Source: Octopus sinensis
Taxonomy: Eukaryota
NCBI RefSeq assembly: GCF_006345805.1
Contig: NC_043015.1
Location: 30,504,001 to 30,568,000, forward strand
Reading direction: 5' to 3'
DNA: 64,000 nucleotides
Part shown: piece by piece, positions 39,401 through 54,400 of the stretch
Layout of the letters: the number at the start of each line of letters is the position of its first letter
Numbering within the stretch: the stretch's first letter is position 1
The notes under the pieces: model-generated
Told to the model about the DNA's origin: nothing
The model's input: only the letters and a program-made list of their open reading frames with translations
Databases searched by the model: none
Position numbers and translations under genes: made by a program

Positions 39401-42400
39401 TAGTATCCCTTGAGCAAACACTTTCATTTTATATTTCTCCAATCTACTTTGCTGTAACTGAATACAATTAGTGACGGTGTGCTGCAAACTGCCAAGTTAT
39501 GCTAACTTGCAAGTAGCTATGCTTATATGTTTTTTACAAACATGAAACATCTATGAATTGGTTTATAGGAAATGTAAATCTATTACTTAGGATCCTAAGA
39601 TTTTTACAGTTTATACAATTTGGTTGAATGTTCCTTCACTTCACCCCTAAACCCTATTATATATGCTTGCTATTTTGTTATTTTTTTTTGTTTTGTTGTA
39701 GTTCATATACATTCTTTTATTTTTTTCTACATTTTAGTTCTGCCTCTTTAGATCATAATTGCCCATCTTTTTATATATCAGGTGTTGTATTTCTATCATT
39801 ATATACAATATAAATGAGAGGAAGAGGTTAAAATATGCTGAACAGGTTTATTTATGTTGGAACAAAGACTAGCATGCAAGGTGTGATTCCATAGAAGTGG
39901 GATACACTGGCCAGTCCTTCTGCAGAGCCTCTAACAATGCTGGGTATCATAGAAGGCAGAAAGCCATCAATGTCTCACAGTGGTCATCAAGGTTGCCTCA
40001 AGGTGATTGTGGATGAAGAGGTGTGAGCTGTGGTGGGGTAGGGCTAACTGGACAGAAGCCGAAACTTGATCAACCCCAGCTGAGTCATCCCATGAAGCTG
40101 TCCGATTGTTGAAAGACCCAAAATACCCAGGGACCCAAGGTAACATCCCTATGTGTCCAGGTGCGTCACAAGATGATAGATAATGATCAAACATACTTCG
40201 ATGAATATATAGATTAATACATTGATTAACTGAAAGACAGGTAGATAGTATTCTTTGGTTATCCATCTACTTTAAGTAAGAATGGATGAAGATTATCTGT
40301 TGCTGAATTCCATCAAACTTGCCTTTAACCTCAAAACAGGTGGGCTGTTTATATGATGTAGTTTGTAATTTCAAGACATACAGGTTCTTGGTCTTTGGCC
40401 TGCACTGAATTTCAGCTGTGAACTTAATATTTTGTACTTTTGAGATTTAGAAGGAAATAAGCTACAGTTTTCCAGATCTAAAGGAATGTTTCTATATCTT
40501 TTATTTGTTTCCCCTTACTTTGCCCTGGTGGTTTATACAGAATTCTGAAATTACAAATGTGTTCTCACACACACACACACACACACACATATAAAATTCC
40601 TTTTGTATTTTCTAGAATGGTGAAACTTGAAGCAGATAATGCTATAAAGAATAGTGTGTAAATATTGGTTAAAAACCCTTTAGATTGAAAAAACTGAAGG
40701 CTAGCCATAGGACTCAAACCCACATCTGTAAACATGAATTATTTTACATTCTCTCAAAGTTCCTAAAAAAGGATAGGATTGCATCTGTCCAATGGTAGAA
40801 CATCTGTCATGTTTATAGAAGATGTGGGTTCAAGTTTCACAAGTAGCCTTTGACTTTTTCTATCCAAAGTGCTTTTTAACCCAATATTTACTATTATAGC
40901 TTTATCCGCTTCAAGTTTCACCATTTCCAAAAAAAAAATAAATAAATAAGTAAATTATTTCACATTCTCTTGAACTTTCTAAATTCTTATGATGTCAGCA
41001 ACATATACAGGCACAGGCGTTTGGTTTTAGCAGTTCAGTTGGCAAACACATGGTTCTGGGACCAATCCTGTTGCATAGTAACTTGGACAAGTGTCTTCTA
41101 ATGAACCCATCTCCCTGTTGTTGACCATCACCAGTAACGTGGTCTTAGAGTAGGCTCTTCATCTCACATCCCTCGCTTCATCTTACTAATTCTTTCTCGT
41201 TGACCTAAAGACCATTCCATTCAGACAACACCAAACTCACCCTCCATATAGTCTTCTCTTTGGTACTTTTACTAGTACACTTCTTTCATCCCATCATAAT
41301 CTATTTTATATCTTATTTTATTTCATTTTATTTTATTTTATTTTATTTTATTTTGCTCCTTGCTTGCAGTTGTTTGATTTATTTAATCTTTTATGTTTTT
41401 TTATTATATATATAAATATATATGATTATTATTTCTTTTAAGTTTTGTAGTATTTTTCTTTCTTCTAAGTTTTTCATTTTATTTCGTTTTTATTTCTTAT
41501 TTTATTTTTATTTTTTCGTTTATTTCCTTTTTATTTATTGATTTGTTTTTATTTTTTATTTATTTCTGTTTTTTTGTTATTATTATTATTATTTTTATTT
41601 TTTTTTGGCTTGGTTTTGTTTTTTTCTCTCTGACTTGATTTCATTTCGCTCCCACTGCCAGGCCCTAGTGACCATGTTTCAAATCCTCACTCAAGAAGGC
41701 TGGATTGAAGTTGTAGATGACCTCATGGACAAAGTAGAATCCTTCCATGTGATCATACTTATTTTAGTTGCTTCCTATTTTGTACTCTTCCATCTTTTTG
41801 TCTCGTTGGTGAGTAGATTACAGCCTTTTTTGTTGTTGTTCTTGTTCTTCTTCTTGTTCTTTCTCATTAACTTGTTTAACATTGATTCCTCGTCTTTTAC
41901 TACCATTTCTCTTCCTCTTCAGCTGTAATGTATGTGTAAACACACACACACACACACACAAACACACATACAAACACTTATGCACATGTCTGTGTGTGTG
42001 TGTGTGTGTGTAATTGAAAACATGACCAGTTTTTGGGGGCTGGGGGTTTATTAAGGATTTTTTTCCCTATTTCTTTATCAGGTCTTTGTAATTTTTATAG
42101 ACTTATAAACATTTTAAGCAGTAATGTAGCTCAGAGGGTGGAGTGCAGGGTAGAAGCAGTCTGACCCCAGAGGACATTTTAACAGAGGTGGCAATTTTGG
42201 GTCTGTCTGTATAGGCTTGGGGGCCCAGTATGGAGGAGGCAAATTCAAAGGTTGCCTCAGACAACACACTCTCTAGCTATGTCACTGATTTTAAGACTTT
42301 ACTGGTTTTATCTTATAAACAAAATAACTTTAGAGATGTTCATTATTGCTGCTTCTATTGACTGACAATCCATCTACAACAACAGTTTTGCATAAACTTA

Positions 42401-51400: not shown

Positions 51401-54400
51401 TCCATACCATACATGGCACCCCCACTGGTCTCCTATTCATTAGTGTACTTTGTGTACAAAGTGCATTCGCCCAACATAAGATTGTGTTATGGGTGGGAAC
51501 AGCCTGATTTCGGTGAACGTTGAAGTGGCACCAAAACACCTGCTGAATTGCTGACAGACTATTTATTCTTCACATAACAGTTGTAGGCAAACATACGATG
51601 CTCTATTGTCCACAGTGCCATGGTTTCACCTGGAAAGGAAAATAATGCTAAGACACCACAGACCGAATGATACTTGTCAGACATACGTCCCTTCCCCTGG
51701 GGCTGAGTAATAGCCATTTCAAAAACGTCGGTCCTCTCTGGACCCACCCTGTATAAAAGTATATTTTCCTTTATTTCTGTTGTTTTTACTAAAAGCTGAT
51801 ATTTCTTCCAGTTTGAAAAACGTTTCCCTTTTTGTTTTCTTCTCCTACAATAACCCTGAGTTGGTGTTTATGCAAATTTACTTTCTAATTGATATATTTT
51901 GTTCAAATACATCAACTTGGGTGTCTTTGACTTTACATAAACCTGTGCGTTTGTTTTTCATATTTTGTATTAAAGCATTAATCATTTTTTACTCTTGTTT
52001 ACCAATTCCTTTGTTTTGTCTTTTTTTCTTCTCCTTCTTTCCAATATCTTGACTGACATATCTGCCTTGCATCCAGAATTCCTATTTCCACAGCAATCAA
52101 CCGAAAGATATATATACATATATATACATACATATATATATATATATATATATATATATATATATATATATATAAGCAATCCTCTGCTCCTGTGTCTTGC
52201 AAGTTGCTAAACCTCATTTAATAACACCGTGTGTATTCGTATCCGTTTTTTTTTTTTTTCCTCTCTATCTCTCCCTCAGGCTTTCATGTCAATGTTTCAA
52301 ATCCTGACCCAAAAGGGCTGGATTGAAGTTATGCATATAACAATGTGGAAAACTGGAAAAGTAGCACCCCTTGTCGCCATCTATTTCATATTCTACCACC
52401 TTTTTGTAACGTTGGTGAGTACATGGTTGGTTAGTTTCCCTTGGTAGAATATGGTGATATGTTTTGGTTTATTTTTTATTTTATTTTATTTTCATTTTTG
52501 TTTTTTGTTTTTTTTATACTTATTTTATACATACATATTACTGTGTGTTTATAAATATTGGTGATTTTATTTTTATTTAAGTAGTTGTTTTTTGTTTTTT
52601 TCTGTATTTTAAATGGCCTATTTTGTGAAAATTAGTTATTATAGTGTAAGTGCTAGATTTATGGTAAACAGCATGTGGTCAAGTGGTTAGTGTGTTGGAC
52701 TTTGTAATCATAAGATCACATGTTCAATACCTTGGCCAGGTGATTCACTGTGACCCTGAACAAGGCATTTCATTTCACTTTATTCCTGTCTAATTAGTTG
52801 ATAATTAGTTGATAATTAGTACCAGCTGAGTGCTAGTGCAATCCTCTCTCCCTCTAACTGTTATAGCTGTGTTGTTTTGCTAGGTTAAGAGCAGAGAGAT
52901 GAGAGGATCGCTGTCTTGTTCCAGCTATACCTGAAGTAGTTTGTGAAAGCACTGTACATGTTACCAGGTTGTGTTCACTTGCAAGGGACCGCTACAATTT
53001 GTTGTTTTCTTTTTTGTTTTTTTTTGTATTTTTTTTTTACTAGATTTATGAAATCTGTGGCATGTTTATTGAAAGAGCTGTCAGAAAGTACCATTTTTTT
53101 GTTTGGTTCCTGAATGTTGTGCACTGTGTTCATTAGCTCTTCACCTTCTGTCATATTATATATATATATATATATATAATAGGGCGGCAAGCTGGCAGAA
53201 ACGTTAGCGCGCCGGGCGAAATGCTTAGCAGTATTTCGTCTGCCGTTACGTTCTGAGTTCAAACTCCGCCGAGGTCGACTTTGCCTTTCATCCTTTCGGG
53301 GTCGATAAATGAAGTACCAGTTTCGCACTGGGGTCAATGTAATCAACTTAATCTCTTTGTCTGTCCTTGTTTGTCCCCTCTATGTTTAGCCCCTTGTGGG
53401 TAGTAAAGAAATATATATATATATATATATATAATTTCTGGATCACAAATAACTTTGTAGGCCTCCTTGCCTATTTTGACCAGTGTTCCACTACCTTTTT
53501 TACACTTGTGGTACATTTCTGTCAAAATTCGGCAGCACACCTAAACTAAAAGTATAGGGAATAAAATGCTTCACATTTAATATGTCGTTTAGTGTTGGTA
53601 ACTGTGGTAAGGAAATATTTGAAATATTCCTTCTAGTCCATAATAGCAGGAGAATATGCTGTAATAATTAGTGTTAGTCAAAATAATAGCAGGGCACTGG
53701 TGATACTAATGGTTAGCATTCCTGTATCACTTCAGGAAATATGAATAAATAATGAAAAATAAATAATAAAACAGGGAATAACAACTCAAGTACTGTATGA
53801 TCCTGACATGTTGTAATGATTTAGATCAACTAACAGTGACCTAATGCTTCCTGTAAAATATGCTCTGATGAAGCAGTACTATGCTCAAAAGCTTTCCAAC
53901 AATGACCATCTTGTCTTTTACTTTAGACAGTGTGTATTTAGCACTATATTACCCAATGTGTTCTTTCTGGGATTTTTAATGGTAATGTGGGATTTGAGGG
54001 AGATATTACTGCTATTTCTAGCAGGTTGATTGGTGAAGATGTTGTAGACTCATTGATTCATATTGATACTGAAGTCACTGATTTTAACTTTTTCCATCAA
54101 ACATGTCAGCTGGCACAAAACTCTGAAGAGTTGACTGTTTCAGAAACTCATCTCAGACAGTTGCTAATTGGCATACCAGCATAATGTTTCAACTGGGTGC
54201 TAATTAAAGCTCTTCAAGTATGCTTATATTTGTAAGAAGATAAATGCTATGTTGCTTCTTTGATATTTCATTGAGTTAAGTTCTGCTCTCCATAAGAACA
54301 TGGAAACATATGTAGGAAAAATTACTTCACAAGAAAGTAATTGGAAAAAAGATATATATTGTATATACATGCACAGACATTTGCTGAACCAGCATAAAAG

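Follow-up and report, generated by a model that had tools for sequence, protein, structure and literature searches.

The stretch of DNA analysed here, 64,000 nt of Octopus sinensis contig NC_043015.1 (positions 30,504,001 to 30,568,000 of the forward strand; hereafter 'the window', in whose coordinates all positions are given), contains the 5′ half of a single NALCN gene, from the start codon through segment S6 of domain II (DII) and the start of the linker between DII and domain III (DIII). Only domain I (DI) and DII are inside the window, and the gene runs off its 3′ end after exon 14. Between the exons encoding S5 and the rest of S6 in DII there are two paralogous exons for the same part of the pore; one encodes glutamate and the other lysine at the same position of the selectivity filter.

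Fourteen coding exons, all with ag/gt boundaries, were identified on the + strand from the ATG at 12117 to 63621; the splice check confirmed one open frame. The exons were located by tblastn with a human NALCN probe, which was used for locating only. Every exon was then checked against the sequences of solved human NALCN structures, and the boundaries were read in the sequence. DI is encoded by exon 1 (12117-12407; ATG, N-terminus and S1-S2, aligned from human residue 3), exon 2 (13703-13786; S2-S3), exon 3 (15208-15347; S4), exon 4 (16758-16886; S5), exon 5 (17669-17814; extracellular turret), exon 6 (18580-18722; pore loop, aligned with the region of human E280) and exon 7 (20587-20691; end of S6, with a second copy at 22009-22113). 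Exon 8 (23435-23656) covers the DI-DII linker and S1 of DII, and is followed by exon 9 (24082-24249; S2-S3), exon 10 (26964-27023; S4) and exon 11 (29111-29242; S5). Downstream of the alternative pair are exon 13 (58044-58118; rest of DII S6) and exon 14 (63548-63621; DII-DIII linker). Exons 2-5, 8-10 and 14 were each supported by tblastn, the splice check and the human alignment, exon 1 by tblastn and the splice check besides its alignment, and exon 13 by the splice check and the human alignment; the limits of exon 11 are identical in three further loci (L003-L005).

The spliced frame is open with either alternative exon (634 or 638 residues). The form with the Lys exon (K form) aligns with residues 3-637 of human NALCN (871 bits, E = 3.8e-261); its best Cav3 match reaches 160 bits and its best Nav match about 105 bits. 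The segment composed of S5, the Glu exon and S6 aligns with human residues 499-613 (E = 4.7e-43). The protein encoded in the window is 67-70% identical to gastropod NALCN (fragments from Lottia, Littorina and Elysia), and its relatives in the protein database are annotated as sodium leak channel.

The upstream member of the pair, of the type published as exon 15a (E exon), occupies positions 41662-41808 on the + strand (147 nt, phase 0/0, 49 residues) and encodes the DII pore helices, the filter TQ-E-GW and the start of S6; the filter codon is GAA at 41695-41697. The downstream member, of the 15b type (K exon), is located at 52280-52414 on the same strand (135 nt, phase 0/0, 45 residues) and fills the same slot with the filter TQ-K-GW, the codon being AAG at 52313-52315. 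The E exon is preceded by ...ctgccag and followed by the donor gtgagtag, the K exon by ...ccctcag and gtgagtac; the donor context cgttg/gtgagta is common to both. The slot is delimited by two constitutive exons, exon 11, which ends in phase 0 at 29242 (...KFDTFPH), and exon 13, which starts in phase 0 at 58044. The three introns around the pair measure 12.4, 10.5 and 5.6 kb, with 10.5 kb separating the E and K exons. Searched by tblastn at E ≤ 10, the window gave no further copy of the pore exon beyond these two. All positions, codons and S5/S6 limits given in the original prediction, which had placed two paralogous exons in one slot, were confirmed in the sequence, as were the intact splice sites (ag/gtgagt on both exons), the 0/0 phase and the common donor context.

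The Glu and the Lys both align to human E554, the DII member of the human EEKE filter. The two exons differ in length, share 56% protein identity and are saturated at synonymous sites. The differences extend beyond the filter residue: the E exon reads ...EGWIEVVD... and the K exon ...KGWIEVMH..., with Asp replaced by His seven positions on, where human NALCN has Asp (D561) as the E exon does, and the linker between pore helix 2 and S6 is four residues shorter in the K exon. The DI filter in exon 6 reads SQEGW, and the predicted Glu of DI was thus found.

Mutually exclusive exons in this slot are known from Lymnaea, where cDNAs contain either 15a (Glu, filter EEEE) or 15b (Lys, filter EKEE), both covering the DII pore to proximal S6 (Senatore et al. 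2013, PMC3557258); the original prediction cited this paper accurately. We consider it highly probable (about 85%) that the DII pore exon of the octopus gene is an ancient tandem pair orthologous in arrangement to 15a/15b, with one member spliced into each mRNA to give a filter with Glu or Lys. All features of the 15a/15b system that can be tested on genomic DNA (slot, phase, order and selection) were found at the locus. We infer that each exon is used in this animal and that their use is mutually exclusive.

Under the proposed mechanism, one exon of the pair would be joined between the S5 and S6 exons in each transcript, the upstream exon putting Glu, and the downstream exon Lys, at the position equal to human E554. 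Choice of the K exon would also swap the acidic residue seven positions on for His, and the pore ring, E-E-x-x with the upstream exon, would become E-K-x-x, with at least two net negative charges fewer and one positive charge more. If DIII and domain IV (DIV) contribute Glu, as in every reported animal with 15b, the two products would be EEEE and EKEE. Judging from the literature and from one intronless relative, DIII and DIV are probably Glu here. No NALCN with Lys in both DII and DIII has been reported (PMC3557258).

The intronless relative, probably annelid-like, is represented by two contigs of the Joint Genome Institute, Ga0056124_1000297 (L006, 690-5612) and Ga0056128_1003067 (L007, 1558-6240), with apparently full-length NALCN frames of more than 1,560 residues that are 66.5% identical to the window protein. 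Their filters SQEGW, TQKGW, SLEGW and TGEDW give E-K-E-E, and exactly one exon of the pair is present. Contigs of a similar accession series carry the same K exon with introns; L006 and L007 may derive from a processed copy of the Lys isoform that was retained, or be cDNA-like contigs. Whatever the origin of the contigs, a message joining S5, the K exon and S6 goes here with Glu in DIII and DIV.

To compare the pair between species we used two unspliced genomic reading frames over the E exon of a related animal, P0096 and P0074, whose contigs were taken as loci L001 and L002. The E exon is 81.6% identical to that of the window at the amino acid level in L001 (10262-10405, one codon shorter) and likewise 81.6% identical in L002, with ag/gtgagt sites kept in both. 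The K exon of L001 (11755-11889, also with ag/gtgagt) is 97.8% identical; the two exons of L001 are 1,349 nt apart. Between the window and L001 the synonymous rate (dS) is about 0.36 in both exons, while the non-synonymous rate (dN) is 0.096 in the E exon and 0.009 in the K exon, giving dN/dS of about 0.27 and 0.025, respectively. Synonymous and non-synonymous substitutions stand at 8.8:10.2 in 15a and 8:1 in 15b, and the synonymous excess is significant in a binomial test for each (p = 0.011 and p = 2e-5). Judged by these substitution patterns, both exons are under purifying selection and neither looks pseudogenised; decay of one member in related species, named in the original prediction as a reason to abandon it, was not seen in L001, frames and splice sites being intact there.

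The introns of the window and L001 cannot be aligned except beside the two pore exons. The E exon is bordered by near-identical sequence over about 30 nt upstream and 20 nt downstream, and the K exon by sequence of roughly 80% identity over about 100 nt upstream and 55 nt downstream; such a pattern of conserved flanks is typical of regulated alternative exons. In L003 the S5 exon, the E exon and the K exon follow in that order, all intact, and the K exon is 82.6% identical to that of the window at the amino acid level. Introns of L001 and L003 are 1.3-1.7 kb long, far below the intron lengths around the pair in the window.

Wider loci were collected by a scan of metagenome contigs of the Joint Genome Institute. 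In L038 and L039 the E exon is followed by the K exon 180-280 nt away. Three rotifer-like loci (L049, 3333-3716; L050, 1053-1436; L051, 112-495) have an NDGW exon, with Asp in the filter, and then a QKGW exon with Lys, about 100 nt apart; rotifers are not among the groups reported to have the pair in the 2013 paper (PMC3557258). The order is the same in L001, L003, L038, L039 and L049-L051, with the acidic exon first and the K exon second. Many other loci, clitellate-like ones among them, run from S5 straight to the K exon with no E exon, in agreement with the loss of 15a reported for leech.

With the single DII pore exons of vertebrates and insects the K exon shares 69-71% identity; the E exon shares 50-54% with any sequence from another lineage. 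The K exon thus appears, from these alignments, to be the conservative member of the pair, and the difference in rate between the exons is clear. A neighbour-joining tree, built on about 45 residues and hence not firm, groups the K exon of the window with those of L001 and L003 and places the flatworm K exons elsewhere; the motif QKGW..VMH.TM is common to the window and flatworm K exons. As some 45 residues give no reliable tree, we draw no conclusion on which exon is ancestral.

A rival reading is that this lineage splices in the Lys exon alone and has the EKEE channel as sole product, the Glu exon being a relic close to loss, as is reported for leech and schistosomes. The tenfold gap in dN/dS, the one-codon difference in length from L001 and the lower identity of the E exon to vertebrate and insect pore exons would all fit such a relic. 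So would the clitellate-like loci and the literature, according to which some lineages have secondarily lost 15a and the EEEE form tends to be lost (PMC3557258). However, the E exon keeps its frame, acceptor, gtgagt donor and filter Glu in the window and in L001, L002 and L003, the synonymous excess in this exon would not be expected of a relic, and its immediate flanks are nearly identical to those of L001 in an intron that is otherwise unalignable. We regard the relic explanation as improbable and retain the reading of a pair in which both exons are used.

Several observations weigh against that reading. Protein searches returned no spliced transcript of this animal or a close relative, only fragments whose identity across the query as a whole was at most 72%; the close matches, P0074 and P0096, were the unspliced genomic frames. 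At the protein level the rate of the E exon is about tenfold that of the K exon, which could mean partly relaxed constraint. Exon lengths of 147 and 135 nt are both multiples of three, and transcripts with both exons or neither would stay in frame. The filter residues of DIII and DIV fall outside the window, and some sequence of the 12.4 kb intron between the S5 exon and the E exon is hidden by a 100-N assembly gap (35914-36013). On the side of function, wild-type human NALCN (EEKE) conducts monovalent cations only and no divalents (PMC7182417), currents of Lymnaea NALCN were not separable from leak in 2013 (PMC3557258), and the EEEE forms of NALCN were described as uncharacterised in a 2025 preprint.

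Lengths divisible by three mean that nonsense-mediated decay cannot police double inclusion or double skipping, and with 10.5 kb between the exons steric hindrance cannot enforce exclusivity; exclusivity would then have to come from splicing regulation. We looked for competing RNA pairing among the flanks of exons 11, 15a, 15b and 13 and found only loose duplexes between low-complexity tracts, two pairs having z-scores of -2.7 to -2.9 relative to mononucleotide shuffles; we do not propose this mechanism. Both exons, or neither, might be present in a sizeable fraction of transcripts: such messages would escape decay, and neither convincing RNA pairing nor steric hindrance is there to prevent them. 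Yet a message with both exons would encode the pore loop and the start of S6 twice, one with neither would lack them, and no four-domain pore could form from either product. Furthermore, cDNA cloning in Lymnaea gave only the two exclusive forms, and the intronless relative contains exactly one exon. Loose splicing of this kind seems unlikely to us, and strict choice of one exon per transcript is preferred.

A candidate splicing control element precedes the E exon: an AG-free tract with 80% pyrimidines (41470-41661, + strand) covers the 190 nt ahead of the acceptor AG. This AG-free zone is the longest among the 15 acceptors of the window, the others having 23-91 nt. The corresponding zone in L001 is 253 nt long (about 10007-10261), and its length is ordinary in the more distant L003 and L004. 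Speculatively, the tract may be a binding platform for pyrimidine-tract proteins. The use of a distant branch point before the E exon was also considered; a CTGAC motif resembling a branch point, about 30 nt before the exon and conserved in L001, weakens this idea and points to an ordinary branch point.

A second exon duplication was found within DI. Two tandem copies of a 1.42 kb segment (20561-21990 and 21982-23416) are 99.5% identical, their alignment of 1,435 positions having 2 mismatches and 5 gap openings. The segment carries the phase-0/0 exon for the end of DI S6 twice (20587-20691 and 22009-22113), the same peptide being encoded by both, and inclusion of both copies of exon 7 would add 35 residues in frame. 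The duplication has its edges in (TA)n-T(n) tracts that resemble each other and lie ahead of the acceptors of exons 7 and 8. Either the exon was duplicated very recently or the assembly is in error here. Together with the N gap in the same window it could raise the suspicion that the pore exon pair itself is an artefact, a falsely duplicated region; but the pore exons are only 56% identical, unequal in length and saturated at synonymous sites, which already refutes the suspicion, and the same pair is present in independent assemblies of other species. We consider an artefactual pair hardly credible.

If the duplication is real, the exon 7 copies are a newborn tandem exon pair, already in need of a choice between exons. 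As a tentative suggestion, which we would not rate as probable, the gene may show both the end state of exon duplication (the E/K pair) and its starting state (the exon 7 copies), with the K exon perhaps spliced by default and the E exon regulated. The latter part of the suggestion comes from the contrast between a conservative K exon and a fast-evolving E exon that has an AG-free tract of 190-250 nt.

Resting excitability is set by NALCN, whose filter varies to an unusual degree among animals. Where one gene can place either Glu or Lys in the pore ring, nature offers an experiment on the influence of a single residue on cation handling. In human NALCN the substitution E554A nearly abolishes block by extracellular divalent cations, and K1115A changes the shape of the current (PMC7182417). 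Because of the effect of E554A, it is safe to predict, by analogy, that the Glu/Lys switch would change the interaction of divalent cations with the pore. To call the E form a calcium channel would not be safe; the terms 'calcium-channel-like' and 'sodium-channel-like' refer to the filter motif and not to a measured selectivity.

Both exons could be used and the switch still be something other than a change from a sodium to a calcium pore, namely a tuning of divalent block, conductance or rectification in a channel that carries monovalent cations in either form. The exclusion of divalents by the human EEKE channel and the effects of the two human substitutions are in line with such tuning; no invertebrate EEEE channel had been characterised as of the 2025 preprint, and the exons differ in more than the filter residue, in the His at +7 and in the length of the linker before S6. 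On the other hand, a Lys in the filter ring of calcium and sodium channels is the classical determinant that lowers calcium affinity (as summarised in a 2025 preprint), and an all-Glu ring is the calcium-channel motif. We see tuning as a serious possibility, though one we would put below even odds. Calcium conduction by an EEEE NALCN has become testable since co-expression with UNC79, UNC80 and FAM155 was shown to give robust currents.

No nested genes were found in the three large introns, which contained only simple repeats and elements resembling short interspersed elements (SINEs), and Rfam and tRNA scans of the whole window gave no matches. The SINE-like element is about 300 nt long and is present in about 14 copies on both strands with 72-97% identity (e.g. 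6444-6725, 8448-8768, 9441-9800, 12861-13055, 15830-16142, 18856-19080, 25246-25524, 34495-34811, 36700-37018, 56928-57096 and 59541-59725); ARAGORN detected no tRNA-like part in it and it has no Rfam match; it is reminiscent of octopus repeats, but a literature search did not find its sequence. Upstream of the start codon, the region 9452-11672 contains two units of about 945 nt that are 98% identical to each other and a partial third stretch of about 340 nt (11336-11672) with 83% identity to the beginning of the unit; all of them include a SINE-like copy. Two TA-rich arrays of simple sequence, each about 3 kb long (more than 90% A+T and hardly any G), are located at 30300-33560 and 45660-48320, in the introns before and after the Glu exon, and explain in part why these introns are larger than in L001 and L003. 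Short frames at 13879-14064 and 63666-63902 have a ...WN.LP... motif as at the protein ends of retrotransposons without long terminal repeats; we take them to be probably decayed intronic retroelement fragments.

The closest known systems are the pairs described in 2013 in Lymnaea, Biomphalaria, Aplysia, Lottia, Capitella, Schmidtea, sea urchins and Saccoglossus (PMC3557258). As in the window, these are tandem exons for the DII pore helices and the start of S6, with Glu first and Lys second, placed between the S5 and S6 exons of a gene with Glu in DI. Genome mining recovered the pair in flatworms, molluscs, annelids, echinoderms and hemichordates, with 15a invariably placed before 15b (PMC3557258), and a 2015 review describes it as a feature of almost all lophotrochozoans and non-vertebrate deuterostomes (PMC4436565), a statement repeated in a 2025 preprint. 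The species of the window does not seem to be among those of the 2013 appendix. The window differs from the 2013 pairs in its very large introns, far above those listed for Capitella, and in the long AG-free tract before the E exon; from Lymnaea it also differs in that the pair is known here from genomic DNA and there from cDNA.

Exons 31a/31b of myriapods and chelicerates (PMC3557258) are likewise a tandem pair, Glu first and Lys second, that switches the filter. In contrast to the pair described here they belong to DIII (EEEE/EEKE), have an independent origin, are shorter and differ from each other almost only at the filter residue. Human NALCN (EEKE; PDB 6XIW, 7CM3 and 7SX3) is of the same family, and the window model aligns with its residues 3-637 with the switch residue on E554, but only one DII pore exon exists there, encoding Glu, and the Lys is a fixed residue of DIII (K1115). 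It is curious that the human DII pore exon is closer to the K exon of the window (about 69%) than to the E exon (about 50%). NALCN of schistosomes, other parasitic flatworms and leech (EKEE only) has a K exon 69-73% identical to that of the window, with QKGW..VMH.TM in common; these lineages lost the E exon, whereas the window keeps both. The locus thus adds a species to an arrangement that has been in print since 2013, not a new principle, and a specialist would expect the pair in such an animal. The added value is modest and consists in the unequal rates of the two exons, with the K exon almost frozen, the change from Asp to His at +7 and the lineage-specific pyrimidine tract.

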